Shown: positions 1 through 44,400 of the stretch, in pieces
How the letters are laid out: the number at the start of each line of letters is the position of its first letter
How positions within the stretch are numbered: position 1 is the stretch's first letter
Assembly: GCF_000315625.1 (NCBI RefSeq)
Contig: NW_005434632.1
Location: 281,901-345,900 of the forward strand
Reading direction: 5' to 3'
DNA from: Guillardia theta CCMP2712
Lineage: Eukaryota; Protista; Cryptophyta
Length of the DNA: 64,000 nt
Notes under the pieces: model-generated
Told to the model about the DNA's origin: nothing
Seen by the model: only the letters and a program-made list of their open reading frames with translations
Database searches by the model: none
Translations under genes and position numbers: made by a program

Positions 1-302
1 CGCAGTGCACGTCAACTACCTCAACATTCAAGGCCCCTCTGTGCTGCAGCTACAGGAAGAAATTGTATGGCGAGATGTGCGTGGACGCCAACGGCATGCT
101 AGACACAATGATCGCTAATTCGAAGACAAGCGGTGAATGCAGCGATGCGGCAGGCTGCATCGACTCTCTCAGCGTGGCGAGCACCACGAGCACCACCAGC
201 CCGACTAAGAGCGCAAGCCCTTCAGCATACAGCTTCGCATCCCTGCCCCTGGTTCTCTTGGTTGCAGCTGTGGGTGTGGTGAAGAGCAGCACTGGCATGT
301 AG
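1..302 (+). CDS. 3' end of a secreted/surface protein, possible GPI anchor (partial, 5' end outside window)
   Basis: Frame is open from the window edge to TAG at 300-302. Cys-containing segment, S/T-rich stalk (STTSTTSPTKSASPS), then a hydrophobic C-terminal tail (LPLVLLVAAVGVV). Confidence 0.5.
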   Translation, partial: QCTSTTSTFKAPLCCSYRKKLYGEMCVDANGMLDTMIANSKTSGECSDAAGCIDSLSVASTTSTTSPTKSASPSAYSFASLPLVLLVAAVGVVKSSTGM

Positions 303-1803
303 TAGCAAGAGAAGGTCCGTGGCTGGTTTCCTGCCGGGTTCTGCTTGACCGCTGATGCAACTTCGCGAGGAAGCAGAGGTTGTCTGCATTTGAGCGGGGT
401 AGAATCATCGAGTCATAATAAACCAAGTCCAACTCTGATCGGCAACAAAGCGATTCCTCATAAAACCTGAAAAAGGTAACGGCATGTGTTGTCACACCCC
501 GAGGCTTTACAGGATGAACCTTCAGCGTAGCTCAACAACAGCTTGCGCTGGAATTTCTCTACTAAGAAGAAAGCAGTCTGACAGAAAGAGACCTATCTCT
601 CTTTATTCTGACACAACGAACAAAACAAACACAACAAGCCAACACGCACTGGCGAGGCAGAAACAGACGTGGCACACACACGAAAGGGGAAGATCACCAG
701 CTAGTACTGACTAGGATGACCCTTTAATAGTTTCGAAGGAGACAGAAGTACCGTCTCTTGGCGGCTGAGGGAAGTAGGGGTGTTCTGTCCTTGGAAGTTG
801 ACAAGCTTCTCTCTTTAGATGTTGAACATTCCTTCAGCACTTCGCAGGCCAGCAAGGCTGCTTCCAACGGGTTGAACTCCACAACTTACGGTTAGATTCA
901 TCCCGGTGTCCAGTTCCGCTTGTTACTTAGTAAGCAACCACGGGTACACCGTCACTGTTCCTCAGCGGCAACAAAGACCTCCAGAGGGGTCCTTTTCAGC
1001 AGATTCACACAGAAGTAGAGTATCCAGGTTTATCCTCACAGGAGAAGTGATTTTCGAACACGGCCGCTGAGTGGACCCCCGAGTCCGATCACTGTCACTG
1101 GGCCACGGTCGGAGTACGGTCCGATCACGGGCCCGGGCCCGGGGGCCCGGGCCGGGCCCGGCGGCGTTACTAGTTAGTATTTTGAGGCGGCCCATCACGA
1201 AGGTTACGATAGTTGGAGAGGGGGTAGGGTAATAAGAAAGAGCGGATCTAAGCTTGAAAAAAGTGGGTACACGATGGGAATGTTTGGGGTGGTACATTGT
1301 GGGGTGGGGTTAAATGTTGAGGGGTCGGGAAGAGAGGGGAGAAAATGCTGCAGAAGGGAAAAGCAGGAGTTAGGCAGCAGGAAGAGCAAGGGAGGGATGA
1401 TGGAGGAGGAAAAGGAGAGAGAATGGGTGGATTCTAGGTGATTTCTGGTAGAGAGAGTAGGATGCTGTGTAAGTAGCAAGGAAGGGGAGGACTTGATGTC
1501 GATTCCTGTAGGAGGGAGGGATACCTGTCCCTACCTTGAACCAGACTTCAGTTTTTGTCCCCTTCGACTGTATGCGATTGACGGACAAGGAGGGTGAAGT
1601 AGTCGTCCACTCAATATGTACCGAGAGGCGAAAAGTACTCTTTGAGGGACGGTGGTTGTGGGCAGCATTAGCAAGAATTGTACTAGAGGAGCATTGGTAG
1701 CGCTCTATCGCAAGGAACTTTGCTGACATCTGCCTTTGCCTTTCTATTCTACAGCCTTTGCCGGGCGTTCTGCTTTAGCCTGCTTTCATGATCTTCTTGT
1801 GAA

Positions 1804-4800: not shown

Positions 4801-7800
4801 TATCTGCTGCTGTTCTTCCTGTCCCGTTAACCCTCGGCTGCTATTCTTTCTTACCTCTTCCCCTCCAGGACGGGGAAAGGTTCAACCGATGGCTGCTGCA
4901 CGTGATGGGAAACGCGCCGTTCCCCCTTCCCAACGTCCTCCCGCAGGTGAGACGCCGAAAGTCTCTTGCTCCTCCTTCTCATTTCTCCTTCAGCTACTCG
5001 AAGAATCTGCAAAGATGGCATGCATGGAGCGATCCAAGGCAAGGGCCTGCCCTCCTCCTCGTCCTCATCCTTGTCCTCCACTGACCTCGATCTCGACCTC
5101 GACCTCGTCCTCATCCTCGTCCTTGTCCTCGACTGTCCTCGTCCTCGTCCTCGTCCTTGTCCTCGTCCTTGTCCTCGTCCTTGTCCTTGTCCTCGTCCTT
5201 GTCCTCGTCATCCTCCTTTAGCATCTCGTTTCCATTCTTAATGCCCCCTTTGTCGTCCTGCTCCTAGTCCCACTTGTCCTGGTCCTCTTCTTGGATCTAG
5301 ACTTGTATTCTCCCCCCCGTCCTCCCCTCCTCTCCCTCACTTGTTCTCGCTCACCTCCTTTCCTCGCAGGTTGTGGGACTCCCTCTCCCTGCTCTCAAGA
5401 GCCTGCTGGAAGCGCGCGAGTCAGAGTTGCTAGAGGGAAGGGAGATGTCCAGCTCGGACCAGAGCAAGAGCAAGTCCACAGGAGCGATCCTCGCTGCCTA
5501 CTACCTCCTGAGCAGGAGGTCGCAATGGATCTCCAAGCAGGTGGAGTCAGGAACGCGCCGCAGGCAACTTCCTCCTCGATCCATGGCTATTCGAAGGTTT
5601 TACAGCTCTTGCTCCCCCTTTCCCCCCTCTTCCTTCTCTCCCTCCCCTTTTCACCCGTCCTGTTCGTCCTCCTAGCCCTCTTTGTCCTCCTCCCCCAGCT
5701 TTCTTCTTTCTCGTCATCCTCGCCTTCTCGCCTTCTCGCCCCCTTACCAACGTGCGCAGAATGCAAGATGAAAGAGGAGCGATCGGACCGGAGATGGTAG
5801 GGCATGCTTCAGGAGGCGGGGAGGGGAAGGAGAAGCAGAGGAAGAATAAGACTACATATGTTGTTGTTGTTGTTGTTGATGATGATGATGATGAAGAAGA
5901 CGATGATGATGATGATGATGAAGAAGAAGATGATGATGATGATGAGGAGGAGGAGGAGGAAGGATGAGGGAGGAGGAGGAGGAGGAGGAGTGACTTGCCA
6001 ACAGGAAGCGATGGTGGCCATGCTGCCTCTCAAGGTCTACCTGCAAGAGATCGAGCAGGGAGGGTATCAGGCCATCCAGCCGCAGTTCCTGCAGATGGTG
6101 AGGACCCTTCCTGCCGCCTCCTCTCCTCCTCCTTCTCCTCCTTCTCTTCTTTCTCCTCCTTCTTCTCCTCCTGCTCCTTCTCCTTCTCCTCCTCCTTATC
6201 CTCCCCTTCCCTCTCCGCCCTCGCCTCCTCCCGCGTATTCCGCTCTTCTCCACCCCCCCCTCCCCTCCTCCTCTTCTCACCTTTTCCCGCAGGTTGTTGA
6301 GCAGTTCCCCGAGGTCCTCCTCGACTCTCATCGCTCCATCGCCTCTGTGGGAACCGACCCGACGCTTCAGGACGCACTCAAGTCCTGCTCCTCTTCCACC
6401 ACCTCCTCTTCCTCTTCTTCCGCTCCTGCCTCCTCGCTCCTCACTCCTTCTCCCCCCCTTCCCTTCCCTCTCGACCACCGCAGGGCAAGGAACGCCTTCC
6501 TCAACTACTCCAGCAACCCTCAGGCCTGCCTCCTCATCCTCGACGTCCTCTCGCGCCTGCCTGACGGCGAGCTGGAGCAGTTCGCAGGTCGCTCGCGCTC
6601 TTTCCCTGCTCCTCCTCCTGCTGACTCCGAGCTCAGGCCTCCTCCTCATGATCCTCCTCCCTCGCATGCTCGTCCAGCAGGTGTCGGGCAGCACAGACCA
6701 GTCAGCCCAGCCCTCCCCCAGCGTCATCGCTCCCCTCTTCGAGGCCCTGTGGGATCGGCTGCTTGCTCGACATCCCTGCCCCATCGTCGCCAAGACCTCC
6801 TACTCCCTCCTTCACTACAAGTCCCTCGTGGCCTGCGAGGAGGACGCGTCCATCAGCTCGGACAGCCTCTTCATGGGATGGAAGTGCTGGGGTTGGGGGG
6901 CTCCCGAGCTGGGCAGGTTGACAGGGAGGGTGTTCGACATCAACACGAGCGGGCTGAGCGGAGGAGAAGCGTTTGAGTTCTCCCTGCTCTCCTTTCACGA
7001 GTCGCTGTCAAGGTAGGACGAGGGCGAGGAGAAGCAGGAGGAGCAGGGGGCCGGGAAAGGTAGAGGAGAGAAGGGGGAGAAAGGGGATATGATGCGATGC
7101 ATTGAGAAAGGGAGGAGCGGGAGGAGGGAGGGAGAAGGAGGAGGAGGAGGGAGGGAGAGGGGGAGGAGGGAGGAGAACAAGAGGGAGGGGAGCCGCTCAG
7201 TGCTTTCACAGGGATGTATTGACGATCTTGTCGATCGACGACCACATATTCCACGAGCCTTCTCTGCTCCGAATTGTCTTGAGCTGCCTGGCTCTCTATC
7301 AGACGATCAGCGAGGTAGGGGAAGGTGATGATGATGATGATGACGACGACGACGATGATGATGATGATGCGGAGGGGGAGGAGGAGGAAGGAAGAGGAGA
7401 GAGGGAGATATTTGATTTTGCGAGCAGATCAGTTTTGATCATGAAGTCTCCAAGTCGCAGAAGATGGTTGATTTTCTCTCCCTCCCTCCCTCCCNNNNNN
7501 NNNNNNNNNNNNNNNNNNNNNNNNNNNNNNNNNNNNNNNNNNNNNNNNNNNNNNNNNNNNNNNNNNNNNNNNNNNNNNNNNNNNNNNNNNNNNNGTGCGA
7601 GTGCACTACCAAACCCATACGCCCCCATCCTCCCCCGCCACCCCCCTACATCCCCTACCTCCACCCCCACCCCCTCCCTCCCCCCCCCCCTTACCCCCCT
7701 CCCCCTCCCTCCCCCCTCCTCCCTCTCCGCCTTATCCGAATTTGATTCGACAAGCAGGATGAAAAGATGCTAGACGAGCAGCTGAGTGTAATCGTCAACA

Positions 7801-35989: not shown

Positions 35990-36700
35990 CAACTTCTGAA
36001 ATTGACTTAATCCGTCTTGTTGTGAGCTTTCACTTTGCAACCTGAAACATCTCCCTGATAGGTGAGAAGTCGATAAGCATGCTGAACGCCATCCCCAGCT
36101 CATATATACCATCATCAGGGCAATGTCAAGTTTCGAAGCCTGATGACCACGCTGTCCTCGACGTCCTAACATTTTCAACTCCCGTAACAAAGGTACCAAA
36201 TCGCGTTGAAAACGCGATTATCTCATCTTGTACATCCTAGATACTATCTTGCCGCAATTTATTGTGAAACAAACAAGCATTCGCAGCTTGGCTCGCGTAT
36301 GACTGGGAGTCAACTATTGGTTTCAGCCACACACACACTTTAGTGATGGTGAGGCTTGTAGGTTCCGTCGCAACGTTGCTGACGGAAACGTTACTGTTCA
36401 GAGGATAGGCATGAAGTCTCAAATCACCTGGAAAGTAGAATGCTTGGCATACTCCGACTTGGAAGAGGGGGTCATTTTCCACACGATGATGCCAGTAATC
36501 ACACCACCAGCTGCAGCATCAGGCTCAGTCTACCCACGATGCCGGGTGCAAACCGAGTGCATCACCAAGAAAGGGCCAGACTTCCTCACGGCTCAACTCC
36601 TTGATCGACTTCTGCCAGAGGCTCATGGATCGGGAAGAGGCGGGCTGGCACCAGCTGCAGTAAGAGGGCAGAACGGAATGGGATTAAAGTGAACCTTGGA
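35990..36700 (+). pseudogene. Possible degraded spliced gene fragment of unknown identity
   Basis: Several intron-sized GT-AG segments (36193-36240, 36349-36401) separate coding-like pieces, but no consistent open frame could be built. Confidence 0.25.
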
Positions 36701-37393
36701 TACAACACGCTGGGTGAGAGAACGGAGACCTTGAGCGATCATCTGTTGATCAAAGTCACGCGGATGTCAAAGATCGAGCTGGCGACGTCGACATGCTTGA
36801 AAACAACATGTACTTCGACTAGAAGCTGTATTTCTTGTCCACTACACATTGCAACTATTCTTCAGCATCACAACTCTAGCTTGATTTCCCGAGAAATGCT
36901 CCTCAGTCCCTTCAAGTACAAGGAGCAAATCATTACACGTCCTTGACAAACTCCTGTTCACCCCAACATCCCCCACTCCCCTCTGCCGCCTATCCTCTCC
37001 CGCATGCTGCGGCAAGACTTTTAAAATAATGTTGAGGCCGTAGTTGTTTTCATATTACTGATTCTACGTAAATATGTAAAAACAATTTTGAAATTATGTA
37101 CTTCTCATACAAAAATCATTTTTATCATGCCATTACAGCAATTTTTTTCTATTGTATAAGAAGGAAATACCGCAACACATATTATAAATTTGTATAGTAT
37201 CTTATTGTTTCCTTAAAAAGATCCCCCGTACTATTACAGCTCTGTGGTACTGATCCAGGCTGGTCTATCGGCGTAGTAGTCCAAGGCCCGGGCGGGCCCC
37301 GGGCAGCGTTCAGGTATGACTGAAGCGGTTATTTTGGTCGTTTCAAAGCGGTTATTTGTAACCGCGGTGTCGGAAATGCTGATGCAGCACGAT

Positions 37394-40300
37394 CACGGGG
37401 GTGGAACTCCTCTTTTACCGGTATTAGGACGGGTACTTTTCCAATCCTTTTTACAGGGGTGGGGTAGTAGAATTTGTTGGGAATCGCAATGGCGATCCCG
37501 CGACAAACTGTTTCGAGGATGAATATCTCAAGAATGAAAATCTGTACAATGCAAAACAAACATTTTGTATTTAGAGATACATACAAATTGTCATTCTCTA
37601 TACTTGTTCGCTTTGTACACGTCTTAATTTTTGACATTTTGTCCTTTCTATCTCTTCTTCCGTAGACTTACAACCAGACAAAGTTCGTAAACCCTGAAAT
37701 CTAGGCATTTGTCCTGTGAATCCTCCTCGTGTATCCAAAGATTGAGTATGTATACGTTTCCGAGATCGAGGTTGGGACCTGCACTCATTCTCTTTGTCCC
37801 GTGTTCCTTCCTCTGCGTTGAAAAGCGTCTTCTCCCCGCGTGGTCTGCTAAGAATGATTCGCTTTTTTGAGTGGTCATACACAAAAGGCAGATTGGGATC
37901 GAATTTTTTTGAGAGCTCAGTGCATGCTTTGTTGAATTTCCTCAAGAAATCTTTCTTGTTCAAATGACCTATCAAAGACCAGAGGTTTTCAACGCTGTCT
38001 GTGCAGAGCGTCCGTGCATTGAAGTCATACTCCTTTTCACCCAACACACCTTTGTTGTTGCTCAAATAACTCTGTATCTGTAGATGTGTGTCCATGGCTA
38101 CAATCAGTCCTTCGAAGGTTACAGATGACAACCCCCTCATGTGCCTCTTGCCCACCCTCATCCAATCCACATCTCTTAGAAGCCAGGTTCGAGCTCTAAG
38201 AATGAGATTTCTTCTTTCAGACTTGGTGAGGCCTCTCTCGTCGAAAGCTCTGTGAAGGCCGTTCATTGCTTCTGCCATTCTTGCTGTTTCAATGTGTCCC
38301 TCTGCATTCAGAAGCGATATGGCCTTGCTGCTGAACATTTTTAACATGATATCCACTGATTGAGGGTCCGTGCACCCATCGACTTCCAGCTGCGTTAGCC
38401 ATGACGAATTCTTCTTGGAAATATCAGTGTACGCAGCATGCCATGTTTTAGCCTCTTGCTGTGCAGTCGGGTTTCTCCCCGAGCCAACCGTGTGCCTGAC
38501 ATTCTTCAGTAAATGATTGATACATGGCGCAAAGAAAAGTAGCTTCTTCGTGGTTGGAGAGATAACAGGGTTTGACAGGTACTCGTTGAATTGAAACCTA
38601 ATCTTGTTTGGATCAAATTCTTCCAATCCATCTGTGATCAATCGTTCGAGCTCCCAAGGCGTGAATTTGGCTGTTTCATTCTCTGCAACCCCTTGTTGTA
38701 TAATGCTATCATATCCATACCGTCGGCAGAAGATGTGGATTCTGCTGTACATCTCGTTCAAACAGGCCTTAGTTCTGGTGGCAGGAGAACACTGCAATTT
38801 CTTTTCTCTCTGGACCTGCCATATCAATTGGTTCCTCCTCAAACTCAAGACGAATTTCTCTATTTGGGCAAACTCTGCAGTGTTCATGTGCATTATTCCA
38901 GATCGAGTTCGAATTGTCACTTGGGACAAGTCAGGTCCATCATATTGGTTCATATTCAGCAAATTGCATTCTCTCTCTACTTCCTGTGCAGTAATGGCTG
39001 GTTCAAAGTCGAATACGCATGAAATGTATGATGCGATCTCTGAGCATATCTGTGATATGCTCAGCTTCTGGGCCTCTTGTTTGATAGCCTTCACCTCCGT
39101 TATGAATGTGCTTGGATTGTTCACGTAGTAATTCCTGTATATGCAAGAAAACTCGCCGTCAAAAGACCAGACATTGAAAATAATTCCACGCTCGTGAGCC
39201 TCCTTTGTAACGGCTTCCAATATTCGAAGACCTTCAGAGGCACTTAAACTTTTGGTTGAAAAACCAATGTACATGGGGACAGGGGGTGTGCTCGCACATC
39301 CATCTTGTGCAACCACACTGATGGCATCTTCAGCCAGTTCAGCAACTGTATGCTTGTAAAATTTCTCATTGTACTTGTACAACTCGTTTTGAAGTTCTGA
39401 TTCGTTGACAGGCAGATCGCCATTCGCCATTCCCTCCAGTTTTCCTATCAATCGAGGAATTTCTACATCCATCTGTTCACAGCCTTCAATTACTGTCTTG
39501 AGGTAACGTTGATGTGGTGTGAACCTGACATCCTCTGGAGATTCGCCTCCGGTTCTATGCTTGGCAACAAATGCATTTCGAACCTTCTTGTATGCTTGCT
39601 CCATATCACTCTTCCTCTGATGCACACTCTGTTGATCGGATCTCAACATGCCAACCAGCTGTTCGCTGATATAGTGTTCTGTCTTTCCTGTCAAACAAAA
39701 CTTTTCCTTGCGATCTTCAAGCAGGTCAAGTCGCTGAGCCAAGTCAGGTTCATGACTTGTTATACCCCCCAGATCTGCTTCACATTCCTCAAACACAGAA
39801 CAAAATCCTGCATTTATCATTGTTTTGTCGATCGCACAACAGTTCACTCCAGTCTGACAATGCTCAGGATTCATTCGACGGAATTCATCCATCATAAATG
39901 TGCACACTCTGGACCTATCATTGCCATGCAGTTTCATGAGATGCCTATCTCGTTTCTGAAGAGTGGATGTGGATGGCAGAGGTAAGTTGTGTAACATCTG
40001 GTCCGCATCAAAAGTTCCAGTATTTTTGTTCCCCGGCCCTGTGAGCAAGCGATATAGACCTGAGGTGCCGACATTCCAAATTGATGCAGCGAAACTCATG
40101 ACTTGCTCAGAGTATCGCATGCCTCTAGTGTCCTTTGTTCGAAAGCCTTGTCGTATCCAGTCGCTCACTATGAATGGCATGATGGGGTGTTTGCTCTTCA
40201 TGCCATCTCCTTCCTGACTGGCGAACATTACGACATCTGAAACTATGTCGGGAAGCTCAGCAGAACGGAGGTTATCCATCGCCCTTTCAACATGGCAGAT

Positions 40301-41365
40301 GGTGAGAAAGCACTTGGCAGTAGGACTTTCGTCATTGGATTCTTCAAGAGACTCATGCTCTTCAAGAATGCTTCGGATGAAATCACGTCTATCCTCCAAT
40401 GGCATTGACTTGAAGTTCTCGCACATTGTATGTGCGAGGAGAGCGAATGCTGTTTTGATATTGCTGTTCTGGTCTTGGCCAATATGTTCAGGCCTTACAT
40501 ACCTGCATGTGGCATGTCAGTGCTCTGGTGCATTCCAGCTCGCTGGTTACCTTGAGTGATAATCGTGTATTTGCTTTTGTAGCTCGTCAACAGTGTCATA
40601 GTGCGAAGTGGCCCAATGTCTGATTTTCTTACACAATGCCTTTTGCTTTTGCCGATGATTCTTTACTTGAATTCGAAGCTTTTGCGCGTCTATGTGCAGC
40701 TGGAATTGATCATGATGCATTTTGGCATCTGCTCCTTGTTGAAACGAGGTGAAGTAATGAAGGAAACAATTTTTGAAGCCCTCTGCATTCTGTCCAAAGA
40801 GGTCACCTAGAAGCGTCAACTTTGCTCGCACATGAGAAGTGTTGATGGTGTGCTGGCTCAGCTTGAGATAACTAGCCGCTACTTGTAGCAAGCTATCATC
40901 CGCGTCGCTTATCTTCAACGTTGCGTGCCCGATGTTTTGCAGAAAATGTAACAATTTCAGCACCAATGCGTCAGTGAACACTGCATAATCCTGTACAGTT
41001 TTCAAGTCGATGTCTTTGAAAGCCCGTCGACAACGTGAACAAGCTTTGATGCAGTGTTGAGGGATCGTCCGAATACTGTTCGTACTGTATCTCGTCTTAC
41101 AAATAGGGCATTCCTCTCTGTCTGCTGTCGTCTTGCTCATGGCAAGGATGCAGTGCAGATTGCCCGCCAAAATTCGGATTTGAATTTCTCCCCATGGCGC
41201 GTCATAGATCTTGCATCGTTGCCTTATACCCCCTGCATGACCACCGCCCTCGATGTGCATCGCGGTCGATGGGAGGGGTATTTAACTGAAAATTAGTACC
41301 AGGTATGGGCTAGAGGCAGTGGTTGGCCCGCGGATGAGATCGAATATAGTAGTTCCACCCCCGTG
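37394..41365 (-). mobile_element. Complete autonomous DDE cut-and-paste DNA transposon, 3,972 bp, P-element-related
   Basis: Perfect 15-bp terminal inverted repeats CACGGGGGTGGAACT (37394-37408) / AGTTCCACCCCCGTG (41351-41365) with CA...TG ends. Identical 9-bp flanks CAGCACGAT at 37385-37393 and 41366-41374. Encloses one intact transposase gene. Confidence 0.93.
37598..41140 (-). CDS. P-element/THAP9-related transposase, two exons (41140-40551 and 40502-37598), ~1,164 aa
   Basis: Removing the 48-nt GTAACC...CTGAC...GCAG intron (40503-40550) joins the 237-aa and 942-aa ORFs in frame (..HDYHSR|YVRPEH..HTMCENF). Motifs RYSEQVMSFAASI..LPLPSTSTL, CCAIDKTMI (D1), WSFDGEF (D2), FFAPCINHLLKNVR, DPQSVDIMLKMFS, LCTDSVENLWS (E). 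N-terminal CPIC..HC..C..C finger. Confidence 0.88.
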
Positions 41366-41433
41366 CAGCACGATGAGAAGGGGCGCATGGGGCGAGGAGT
41401 AGCGGAATGGTGGTGAGAGGAGAAAGAGAGGAG

Positions 41434-44400
41434 ATGGCAGAGGCAGCGATATCAGATGAGGAGGGGAACATGGTCGATCCCCGGAGGTCTAGGAGCTCTA
41501 GAGTTGTTGGAGCACTTGCTGGTCCGTGGCAAGGATATGTGGAGATAGAAATTTGCGTTCTTTTTCGACATCAGAATGATGAATCATGTAAAACGTGGTT
41601 GCAAAGTCCATGATTTACTGCTTATGATCTGTGATGCTGATATGGTCTGACCTTGTTTTCGGAAACCCTGCCATGTTTTCTCTCAGATGGAACGTTGTTC
41701 GTTGTATGGCCTGATCTTCTAGAACAAGAGCTGCTGGAGCATCGAAGCTGATGTTATAACAACACAAGATGTTTGGAGCAGGTTTCGATTGCTTTTCGAT
41801 GTTGCCAGAACTTGATCTTTGTTTCGCAGAAAATCCGTTGGAGGGCTCTTTGTCCTCAAAGGTAGAAAAGTATGTGGAGCAAAAGTATCGTCTTGACAGC
41901 ATTGGTAGCAGCTCAACTACATCAGAGACACCTTTGCAGCTGTTTCCAGCATATCTGGTAATCAAGCTGAATCCTTGAACTTGTATCTGGTCGCATTGTT
42001 GTCCGAGTTTGTGATTTGTGCAATCCTGTGCCTTGGAACATTGGATGGTTGGAGGCCGAGAAGTGAATGAGATACTGAATGTCATAGAACGAGGAGATGA
42101 CTTGGACCTGCGTTCTCGTTTGCTTTTCTGTGACTGTCGCCCCGCAGGTCACATCAACAGAGATCAGTTTGAAGAGGTGTTTCTGAAGCTGGAACTCAAA
42201 CCCACCCTTGAACAGATCGATGAGGTGGTTTTTACCATTGTTCTCAACATTCCAGACATTTTGCTGTCCATTTTGCTGATCCTTTGTGGATCAGTTGTGG
42301 CAAAGTATGGACACGACGAATTGTGGGCAGGTGGACATCAAGGACTTCACCAGAGTCTGCGGAGAACTTTTGATCGCTACGACATTCCCAAGAGAGGTAC
42401 TGCATTTCAATCTGCGAGAAACAGTTACAGATGTATTCTTCTTTGGATGAGGCTTTCATCTTCTCATTCTCAAACTTTCCATCTGCTCCTCCTCGCAATA
42501 CTCCTCTGCCTTTAACTGCCTGCTCCCTCGTGCCTGCCGCTCACAAGCTTGCTTTTCCTTGCTCAGGGGATTGCCAGCTCCAACTCAACAGAAATGGCAG
42601 ATTTCAAGGTACCTTGACTTCATTCGCAATCACAATTGCCTCTCACGTTAGCTTGCAGAGAATTTTCGGCACTCAGATTCCTCCTTGGCTGGAAAACGAT
42701 GGCTGGCCTCTACAGTCCGAGTCCTTGGGGACGCAACTTCGGATCAACTGCTTGCAGACTCGGCTATCAGGGACTGGGGAGCTTTTCAGAATGCTGATTG
42801 AGAAAATCAGCCACCTGGAGGTGACAAGGCTCGAGAGCCTCTGAAAACTTATGCTGAGCATGTGCTGACCTTGAGCTGTGTGTATGAAGGTTTGTAGGAG
42901 CAGCCTGACTCACGAGGTAGAGGCATTGAAACCCTGTCAGGAGAAGCTGGTGGAGGTGGAGACTGAGTGATGCGTCCAGTTCCTCTGCTCCCTCGTCGCT
43001 CACCTGATCTCCAGGCTGAAGAAGGAGCAGGACAAGACCAAGTCCCTGCAGCGCGAGAACGAGTCGTTGACTCGGGACCTGAGTGTGCTAAGGAGGATGG
43101 TCATAGAACTTGGCGGAGACGAGTCCTCGCTGCCTGCGAAGCGTTCGGCTTTCACAAAGGAGCAGGAGCACATCTTGCACGAGCTGCAAGAGCAGGTACG
43201 ATTGTTCCAAGTTCGAAAGCTCACCTCGCCTCGGCCTTGTCTTCCTGTCATCTTGACATCTCCGTTCCTCCTGTCTGCACAGTTGTCAGTGTCGCACCCT
43301 GACGTTGTCTAACCCACGTGCCGACACCCATTGTCGCCCCCCTGACGTCGCTCGTGTAAAGGTTCGAGAGTTGTCAATGCCGGACGAGAGGTACTGCAGG
43401 CTTGAGGAGTGCGTAGAGCAGGTACTGCTGCGTGCTAGCATGACCGTGCATGCCAGTATGACCGTCGTCTATCTTCTCCTCACATTCTGACAGTTGACTC
43501 GCACCAATGCCGAGCTGATCGAGAAGTGCGAGGCCTCTGAGTCTCTCCTGCAGTCCGTCCTGCAGGTTTTCGCCCCCTCCTCCTCTCCTCCCTTTGACGC
43601 AGGTCACCCGGAAGACGCAGTGACGATGGGTCAGGTGAACCAGTACCTTGTGTCTCGCCAAGATGACCATCTCAAGAAGTTACAAGACAATCAGTCAAAA
43701 CTTGTTGATGCAGAGGTGATGTCGCCTCCTCGATGTCCTCCCTGCTTCTTTTCCTTCCTCCCTCCCTCCTCCCTCCTCCCTCCTCCCTCCTCCCTCCCTT
43801 TCCCATCCTCCCTCCTTCTGCCTCTCTCCTTCCCTCCTCCCTCCCTCCCTGTCCCCACCTCCTTTCTCCCTCCTCATTCTTCCATCCTCATTCCTGCCTC
43901 CTTCCCACCTCCTTTATCTCCCTTCCAACCTTCTCTGCCTCGTCTCCCCTTTCCTTGTCCTCTTCTTCTTCCTCTTCTTCTCCTCCCTTGCATGCTGCTC
44001 GCTCACATTCCTGCAGCTCGAGTGCAGCCGCATCCAACATGCGCAGATTCTCTCCAGCAAGATCAGTCAAGAGCTTGCAAGTCGCCTCGACCTCGCTGCT
44101 GTGCTGCTTTCCGCCAAGTTCGGTCCTGTTGAAGGTGAAGGAGGAGGTCGATGAGGAGGAGGCGGAAGGGGATGGGTCGGTGGGCTGGGGAGATGAAAAA
44201 CTCTGATGCTGGTGGAAAGCAGGAAGTGCTGCGGGGGATGTCGAGCGGCAGCAGGACGAAGAGGAGGAGGCGGAGAGTGCCAACGGGGGGGGAGGGGCCG
44301 AGAGGGTCCAAAAGAGTTTGCAGAGGTTCGACGAGGGTGCGGAGAGCTGGCTGGCAGCTCACCAGCAGCTGGGGGAGGAGGAGGAGGTGAAGAAGGCCAG

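Follow-up and report, generated by a model that had tools for sequence, protein, structure and literature searches.

We analysed a stretch of 64,000 nucleotides from the cryptophyte alga Guillardia theta CCMP2712 (assembly GCF_000315625.1, contig NW_005434632.1, positions 281,901 to 345,900 of the forward strand; hereafter the window), which holds a DNA transposon with one transposase gene, flanked on both sides by a short direct repeat (Table 1). The terminal inverted repeats (TIRs) are 15 bp long and match perfectly (CACGG...CCGTG), the copy at the gene's 5' end being the exact reverse complement of CACGGGGGTGGAACT. These are the only two occurrences of the 15-mer without mismatch in the whole window, and the similarity of the two ends extends beyond 15 bp to 23 nt at 87%. 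Both TIRs are directly abutted by CAGCACGAT. The G+C content of the element is 45.2% versus 53.9% for the window and ~53% for the flanks, and no tandem repeat was found between 35516 and 43429, with dense arrays on either side. The initial annotation, made from the sequence alone, had described the element as AT-richer and free of microsatellites, which agrees with these values.

The ends of the element were fixed independently by junctions at which the sequence past CACGG or CCGTG differs from that in the window. One such junction lies in a second copy of the element (L001, scaffold JH993082.1), where it reads ...CCCCCGTG/AAGTTATAAGG and unrelated sequence follows past the element end; the others come from run X6 (one contig) and the DNA run X1 (four contigs). 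With the ends fixed, neither the 8-bp flanks (AGCACGAT versus CAGCACGA) nor the 10-bp flanks are identical. Since the flanks agree only when 9 bp are taken, the target site duplication (TSD) of the window copy, the one complete copy on which its length was measured, is exactly 9 bp. The reservation that the ninth base might match by chance cannot apply to this copy, as its ends are set by independent junctions.

The transposase gene is a single gene of two exons and encodes 1,204 aa from the first ATG or 1,164 aa from the second. The splice was confirmed by the product of a public MMETSP transcript (P0159), which reads ...DYHSR/YVRPEH... over the junction; a skip of the intron (40550-40503) was not found in the contigs of two DNA runs. 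The perfect TIRs, the exact 9-bp duplication and the two-exon reading frame of ~1,164 aa that had been proposed from the letters are thus confirmed by sequence and transcript. In L003, a copy from a related family with 54% protein identity, the exon 1 region is kept but a stop precedes the site of the second ATG, and for this reason the 1,164-aa product is favoured. The gene is expressed, as seen from the spliced sense transcript and from RNA-like contigs over the element.

Table 1. Positions of the transposon, its gene and the regions of the encoded protein within the window
Feature	Position	Strand	Basis or remark
Whole transposon	37394-41365 (3,972 bp)	gene on minus strand	TIRs; junctions of second copy and contigs
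TSD, left copy, CAGCACGAT	37385-37393	n/a	identical to 41366-41374
TSD, right copy, CAGCACGAT	41366-41374	n/a	identical to 37385-37393
TIR at gene 3' end, CACGGGGGTGGAACT	37394-37408		same end with different flank in L001 and one X6 contig
TIR at gene 5' end, AGTTCCACCCCCGTG	41351-41365		four X1 contigs exit here into other flanks
Exon 1	40551-41260	minus	first ATG 41260; second ATG 41140, giving the 1,164-aa product
Intron, 48 nt, GT..AG, in frame	40503-40550	minus	transcript product P0159 lacks it
Exon 2 including stop, 967 codons	37598-40502	minus	stop at 37598-37600
Zinc-finger-like motif CxxC-x13-H-x4-CxxC	41015-41110	minus	Cys/His kept in the 54%-identity family
Helix-turn-helix region, GMRYS...NLPLPSTSTL	39902-40189	minus	aligned to FPLPSRTTL, P element 184-192; pLDDT 70-90 (model 2)
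Putative first catalytic Asp, D462 (D225 of exon 2), AIDKTM	39827-39829	minus	aligned to P element D230
Insertion 1, beta2-beta3, long antiparallel helices/coiled coil, ~135 residues	39344-39742	minus	model 2
Putative second catalytic Asp, D685 (SFDGEF)	39158-39160	minus	nearly invariant in A5; follows strand 444-447
Insertion 2, beta4-beta5, low-confidence helices, ~175 residues	38552-39121	minus	model 2
C897-I-N-H900 motif after beta5	38513-38524	minus	aligned to P element D339-T-P-H342
All-helical insertion domain, equivalent in position to the GTP-binding domain of the P element transposase	38012-38476	minus	pLDDT ~90+ over most
Putative catalytic Glu, E1075 (TDSVENLW)	37988-37990	minus	nearly invariant; aligned to E531 in QDIVEHFF

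Fold and sequence kinship of the transposase

Residues are numbered on the 1,204-aa product, that is, by the exon-2 number plus 237. The protein would carry, in this order, a zinc-finger-like module, a helical region, a helix-turn-helix (LPxPSxxTL) and a split RNase H fold with D462, D685 and E1075; in the last part, a CxxH motif after beta5 would be followed by an all-helical insertion domain in place of the GTP-binding domain of the P element transposase. Two models were made with AF2 (AlphaFold 2). Model 1 had a mean predicted local distance difference test score (pLDDT) of 64.9, and its core superposed on the P element transposase with Z 23.1 over 275 residues. For model 2 (pLDDT 72.3, predicted template modelling score 0.70) the alignment kept the N-terminal parts of the relatives. 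In an exhaustive comparison of model 2 with 48,161 PDB representatives, the P element transposase of Drosophila (6p5a chain A) came first: residues 95..869 of the model superposed on 128..569 of the chain, 396 of its 442 resolved residues being matched with Z 17.0 and a root-mean-square deviation of 3.2 A. All other rows had Z <=9.3 and covered the coiled-coil/helical-bundle insertion only. The same structure was also first in a re-ranking of the Foldseek matches, in which other transposases had Z values of 8.6 (Transib), 8.2 (RAG1) and 7.7 (Hermes); Foldseek itself gave E 6.7e-4 and a target-normalised template modelling score of 0.69. P/THAP9 families with PF21787/88/89 were the nearest neighbours in the ESM Atlas by shape and also among the feature clusters (language-model feature score 0.95). 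For exon 1, the feature search of the protein atlas was uninformative, its scores reaching at most 0.77 (IS66 transposases).

Sequence comparison led to the same protein when relatives were included. Profile A3, made from the family and its relatives, had one convincing match in the PDB, the P element transposase, with E 3.7e-6 over residues 321-444 and a weak continuation over 496-556. The match covers beta5 with D339xxH342 and extends over the first half of the GTP-binding domain, the E531 region being weak; it aligns FFAPCINHLLKNVRH with FVFSDTPHLIKLVRNH and DPQSVDIMLKMFS with AKQKVKLATQLFS and, more weakly, TDSVENLW with QDIVEHFF round E531. Profile A4, made from the N-terminal parts, matched only the same chain (E 0.012, residues 180-246) and aligns NLPLPSTSTL with FPLPSRTTL and AIDKTM with AFD230EM. 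The assignment of the protein as P-like in the initial annotation is therefore upheld by both the profile hidden Markov model (HMM) and the structure comparison, each of which placed the P element transposase first (E 3.7e-6; Z 17.0). A profile of the three Guillardia sequences alone matched no PDB sequence. The Pfam scan at E<=1 returned no family in exon 2 and no THAP domain (PF05485) in exon 1, as the initial annotation had stated for THAP, and the TNP-like families PF21787, PF21788, PF21789 and PF12017 were not matched by the protein at this threshold.

By these alignments, the predicted catalytic triad D462, D685 and E1075 is collinear with D230, D303 and E531 of the P element transposase. 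In all 23 sequences covering this region (A4, A5) the residue at D462 is Asp, and it falls in a confident beta strand of model 2 (220-228). D685 sits at the end of beta4. Another residue, D400 in exon-2 numbering, had been suggested by A3 as the first catalytic Asp; it was ruled out by the N-terminal alignments and by the model 2 strand containing D225. The reading of the motifs made by eye, with the first Asp in AIDKTM, CxxH after beta5 and the Glu in TDSVEN, was borne out by profile alignments and structure. The D303-D339 spacing is 36 residues in the P element transposase versus 212 here. Structural matches to insertion 1 were helical bundles only, and the nearest metagenome relatives carry a HhH motif at the site of insertion 2. 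At the C/D position of the motif after beta5, C is found in 14 rows of A3 and D in 35.

In the P element transposase, GTP is contacted by K385, K400, V401, S409, F443, D444, N447 and D528 (PMC7776569). In the HMM alignments, three of these residues (V401, S409 and D528) are conserved, and S, H and R stand at the positions of K400, F443 and D444. K385 has no counterpart, being part of an insert, and the alignment does not reach N447.

Copies and transcripts in G. theta

The proteins closest to the transposase were hypothetical proteins of G. theta CCMP2712 (98% and 54% identity) and the product of one G. theta transcript. The second copy, L001, shares 98.6% identity with the window copy across 2,478 bp and carries the same TIR next to a different flank. 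It is 5'-truncated, its frame is open, and its codons differ from those of the window copy by 12 synonymous and 16 non-synonymous changes. Among the reference loci reached via annotated proteins, no second copy with both ends was found. In the DNA run X1, the word depth of element-internal contigs was 615-742 versus 60.6 and 63.2 for the flanks, and the contigs of tenfold depth were identical to the window copy. Four X1 contigs leave the right TIR into other flanks, and the one X6 contig enters the left end from another flank. A deletion derivative with the joint 38646>40464 (1,817 bp lost) had an X1 depth of 189, ~3x the flank depth. The same joint is present in the reference at L005:5059-6795 (JH992977.1), an internal-deletion copy without either terminus whose 5' part is only 82% identical. 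The depths are consistent with ~10 near-identical full-length copies and ~3 deleted ones, where the ratio of contig word depths is a rough guide only. The tenfold depth, the 98.6% identical copy and the deletion derivatives point to recent activity, and the second copy and the read-run contigs fit the earlier view of a young, possibly active element.

A second family, with 54% protein identity, is represented by L002:5899-8819 (JH993032.1) and L003:6088-7968 (JH993321.1). Its 3' end reads AGTTCCTCCCCCGTG and is nearly identical to that of the first family. L002 has kept only the 3' TIR, the 5' end of L003 is degenerate, and the second-family copies that were fetched are truncated or internally deleted. 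This family is expressed in MMETSP transcriptomes (P0003, P0004, P0155).

Metagenome contigs from the Joint Genome Institute that contain the exact CACGGGGGWGGAACT (at least 120 hits) were considered as extra copies. They were rejected as chance matches, with nothing similar beyond the 15-mer by blastn and tblastn. Run X12, labelled freshwater metagenome, contained flank-like contigs for 36620-37028 and 41452-41702 that were ~6% different and had a depth of ~5, together with element contigs that were 99.9% identical and had a depth of ~14. The simplest reading is that X12 holds G. theta at low coverage, with the element visible through its multiple copies, and a related cryptophyte.

RNA-like contigs of X6 skip 39356-39411 (56 nt) and 40065-40110 (46 nt). 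The ends of both skips read GT..AG on the plus strand, antisense to the transposase gene, and both skips were absent from the DNA runs X1 and X12. In X6, antisense spliced RNA seems to be dominant over the element. The transcript product P0159 carries the removal of the sense intron as well as the 46-nt skip, which causes a frameshift after GMRYS; this probably reflects sense and antisense RNA assembled without strand information.

In an X6 contig, a 92%-alike version of 41145-41302 (plus strand), the element's 5' end, is joined to the exons of a gene on the plus strand (41687-41781, 41830-41861, 41909-41957, 42148-42224 and 42295 onwards; region 41145-42380). The two parts meet at a GT..AG skip of 41303-41686, by which the TIR, the TSD and 320 bp of flanking sequence are lost. 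The product of this gene begins MFGAENPLEG... and is EF-hand-like by eye. The joined version of the element end has 12 mismatches in 154 nt, and the same version was found in one X1 contig of single-copy depth. The neighbouring gene may use the element end as a promoter or an alternative first exon.

Relatives and the CxxH clade

A HMMER scan of 1.84 billion representative sequences yielded 141 matches, with the Guillardia proteins first, then unnamed proteins from marine and other metagenomes (some with HhH) and then long animal proteins. The long animal relatives carry a YqaJ nuclease domain, and 3 of 51 relatives reach PF21787 (TNP-like RNase H N-terminal). When the Guillardia family was aligned with the animal relatives by hhalign, the probability was 99.9% (E 1.2e-35). 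In a tree of the beta5-to-alpha4 region, built without canonical P or outgroup sequences, the rows with C fell into one group (starred; 14 C and one D) with a Shimodaira-Hasegawa-like approximate likelihood ratio test (SH-aLRT) value of 95, apart from the animal rows with D, and at least two C/D changes were found. The tree places the Guillardia element in a CxxH clade whose other known members are all unnamed metagenome sequences, which is in keeping with the branch of its own suggested for it at the outset.

The surroundings of distant relatives in three metagenome contigs (L126, L127 and L128) were searched for inverted repeats and TSDs, and only L128 (k141_7012899) has a perfect 15-bp inverted repeat around the gene. 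There, the gene of P0040, a relative of 1,285 aa from the CxxH clade, is bracketed by CACCCTGTGGACAGA at 415-429 and TCTGTCCACAGGGTG at 6328-6342. This inverted repeat also begins CAC...GTG, and no direct repeat adjoins it.

Animal proteins with both YqaJ and TNP-like RNase H (Batillaria KAK7507914.1, P0020; Branchiostoma XP_078686954.1, P0035) resemble the Guillardia transposase in that the blocks helix-turn-helix-beta1-beta2, beta3-beta4 and beta5-to-alpha4 are homologous and collinear. The beta2-beta3 site is filled by an inserted module in both. They differ in that the animal proteins have DxxH and a YqaJ nuclease between beta2 and beta3, whereas the Guillardia protein has CxxH and a coiled coil. 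A YqaJ-like domain inside a P-like RNase H fold was seen in P0020, P0021, P0034, P0035, P0041 and others (Batillaria, Branchiostoma and unnamed assemblies). It lies between the beta1-beta2 block (LSxDGK..GDxDLWG) and the beta3-beta4 block (EVLVFxLSDxDR..FDGQW). Literature searches for YqaJ-bearing P-like transposases found no description.

A wider reading of these data can be offered only tentatively, and we consider it rather doubtful as a whole. The CxxH clade (Guillardia with unnamed eukaryote sequences from marine and other metagenomes) would be an uncatalogued deep P-type lineage that lacks the GTP cofactor and makes 9-bp duplications, the beta2-beta3 loop would be a recurrent docking site (for a coiled coil here and for the YqaJ nuclease in animals), and the Guillardia element, with ~10 near-identical copies, would be a P-type transposon live and endogenous in a secondary-endosymbiotic alga.

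Alternative readings and comparison with known systems

Our findings support, with a probability of about 0.85, the reading that the element is an autonomous, recently active class II cut-and-paste transposon of the P element/THAP9 (TNP-like) structural family. Several points weigh against it. The TSD length comes from a single complete copy, the copy number from depth ratios that are approximate, and neither an excision nor an empty site nor a new insertion was seen. The protein has no direct Pfam match, and its own three-sequence profile has none in the PDB. The sequence link to P requires profiles that include distant relatives and is marginal in the N-terminal part (E 0.012). A P-like requirement for GTP is doubtful because most of the GTP-contact residues are lost, three of the seven placeable contacts being kept. 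Literature searches, with Repbase outside their scope, found no described P-like family in cryptophytes, and the family may already be catalogued in Repbase.

By analogy with the P element (PMC7776569), the zinc finger and the helix-turn-helix would bind the 15-bp inverted ends, and pairing of the ends would follow. The RNase H site would then excise the element and join its 3'-OH ends (terminal G) to the target. The attacked target phosphates would be staggered by 9 bp, and gap repair would leave the 9-bp duplication.

Animals are the best-known hosts of P elements, whose dependence on GTP and targeting through THAP count as hallmarks. A probably active cryptophyte relative that, judged by its sequence, lacks THAP and most GTP contacts and has extra modules in the catalytic fold would show the range of this architecture. 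With the Guillardia element one could ask directly whether GTP use is ancestral or a trait of the animal lineage, and in practice such an endogenous cut-and-paste element, if active, could become a tool for insertional mutagenesis in this alga. The family, with at least two subfamilies, deletion derivatives and no Pfam match, is probably unmasked in annotations, where its pieces appear as 'hypothetical proteins'.

The locus might instead be an immobile relic or a domesticated gene, with the 9-bp repeat as the trace of an old event. This would agree with the lack of an observed excision or new insertion, with RNA-like contigs that are mostly antisense-spliced, and with copies of the 54%-identity family that have no recognisable ends. 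It is, however, very improbable in view of the perfect TIRs and TSD, the open frame, the window-identical contigs at ~tenfold depth, the 98.6% identical copy elsewhere, and the deletion derivative at ~3x flank depth; moreover, several different flanks adjoin the same ends. A separate lineage of superfamily rank with this element as its first recognised member, in which the CxxH clade of protist and marine sequences is sister to P, works without GTP cofactor and cuts with a 9-bp stagger, has more in its favour and is still unlikely. The missing Pfam TNP-like match, the grouping of the CxxH rows (14 C and one D, SH-aLRT 95) apart from animal DxxH, the two extra core insertions, the zinc finger in place of THAP, and the state of the GTP contacts (K400, F443 and D444 replaced, K385 without counterpart) would all fit such a lineage. 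Against this, 396 of the 442 P element transposase residues superpose with Z 17, the only PDB sequence matches are to the P element transposase, and the DxxH animal relatives, which are linked to PF21787, are homologous at E 1.2e-35. The tree contained neither canonical P nor outgroup sequences, and rank is a matter of convention.

TSDs are usually 9-10 bp long in MULEs (Mutator-like elements) and 8 bp in hAT elements, and Kolobok duplicates TTAA. The initial annotation had proposed that the element combines signatures of different superfamilies, and a MULE-like or hAT-like element, or a true hybrid, could be argued from the 9-bp TSD and CxxH, which are usual in MULEs, CxxH being usual in hAT elements too (motif: PMC3706591). 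However, C and D alternate in one motif, C/DxxH, which is common to hAT, Kolobok, P, MuDR and IS256 (PMC3706591), and 9-bp TSDs occur in the P element of D. buzzatii and in 13 of 17 BuT5 copies of D. mojavensis (PMC3698922). The claim of a mixture falls because neither the 9-bp TSD nor CxxH is foreign to P; the likeness to MULE/MuDR consists of these two features, both of which are common to other superfamilies and not diagnostic. Neither the protein nor its 51 relatives contain a MULE, Transposase_mut, SWIM or hAT-dimerisation (PF05699) Pfam family, and the motifs LPxPSxxTL, KQxV..A..FS and QDxxExFF, from the DNA-binding and catalytic parts, align to the P element rather than to MuDR. Hermes shares with the Guillardia protein the CxxH motif and an insertion domain between beta5 and alpha4, but it reaches Z 7.7 versus 17.0 for P; the structure matches include no solved eukaryotic MULE, and fold comparison alone does not decide against a MULE. 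With the 9-bp TSD also differing from that of hAT, we consider a MULE-like, hAT-like or hybrid origin the least probable of the alternatives. The TSD CAGCACGAT also separates the element from Kolobok, being 9 bp long and not TTAA. Dada elements have 6-7 bp TSDs and insert into small RNA genes (PMC3706591), whereas the TSD here is 9 bp and the flanks vary between copies.

The comparison with the P superfamily (P, 1360, Galileo, THAP9; PDB 6p5a/6pe2) remains the closest. The helix-turn-helix, the split RNase H fold and the helical insertion domain between beta5 and alpha4 superpose, and the motifs FPLPSxxTL, (A/L)xD(E/K)xM, x(2)H-L-(I/L)-K-x-V-R, KQxV..A..FS and (Q/T)DxVE align. The CA...TG ends with a terminal 3' G and the internally deleted derivatives are also shared, as is the 9-bp TSD with the D. 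buzzatii P element and most BuT5 copies. The differences are a CxxC..H..CxxC finger instead of THAP, a D(2)H motif whose D is replaced by C, two additional RNase H insertions (~135 and ~175 residues), TIRs of 15 bp versus 31 bp in the P element, a cryptophyte alga as host, and a protein without a Pfam TNP-like match. The absence of THAP is expected in an alga because THAP has been reported only from animals (PMC7776569), and for the same reason this domain is no defining trait of P-like elements in protists. We conclude that the element is best placed among the P-type transposases as a divergent lineage, an uncommon offshoot of a known kind of mobile element and not a mixture of kinds.

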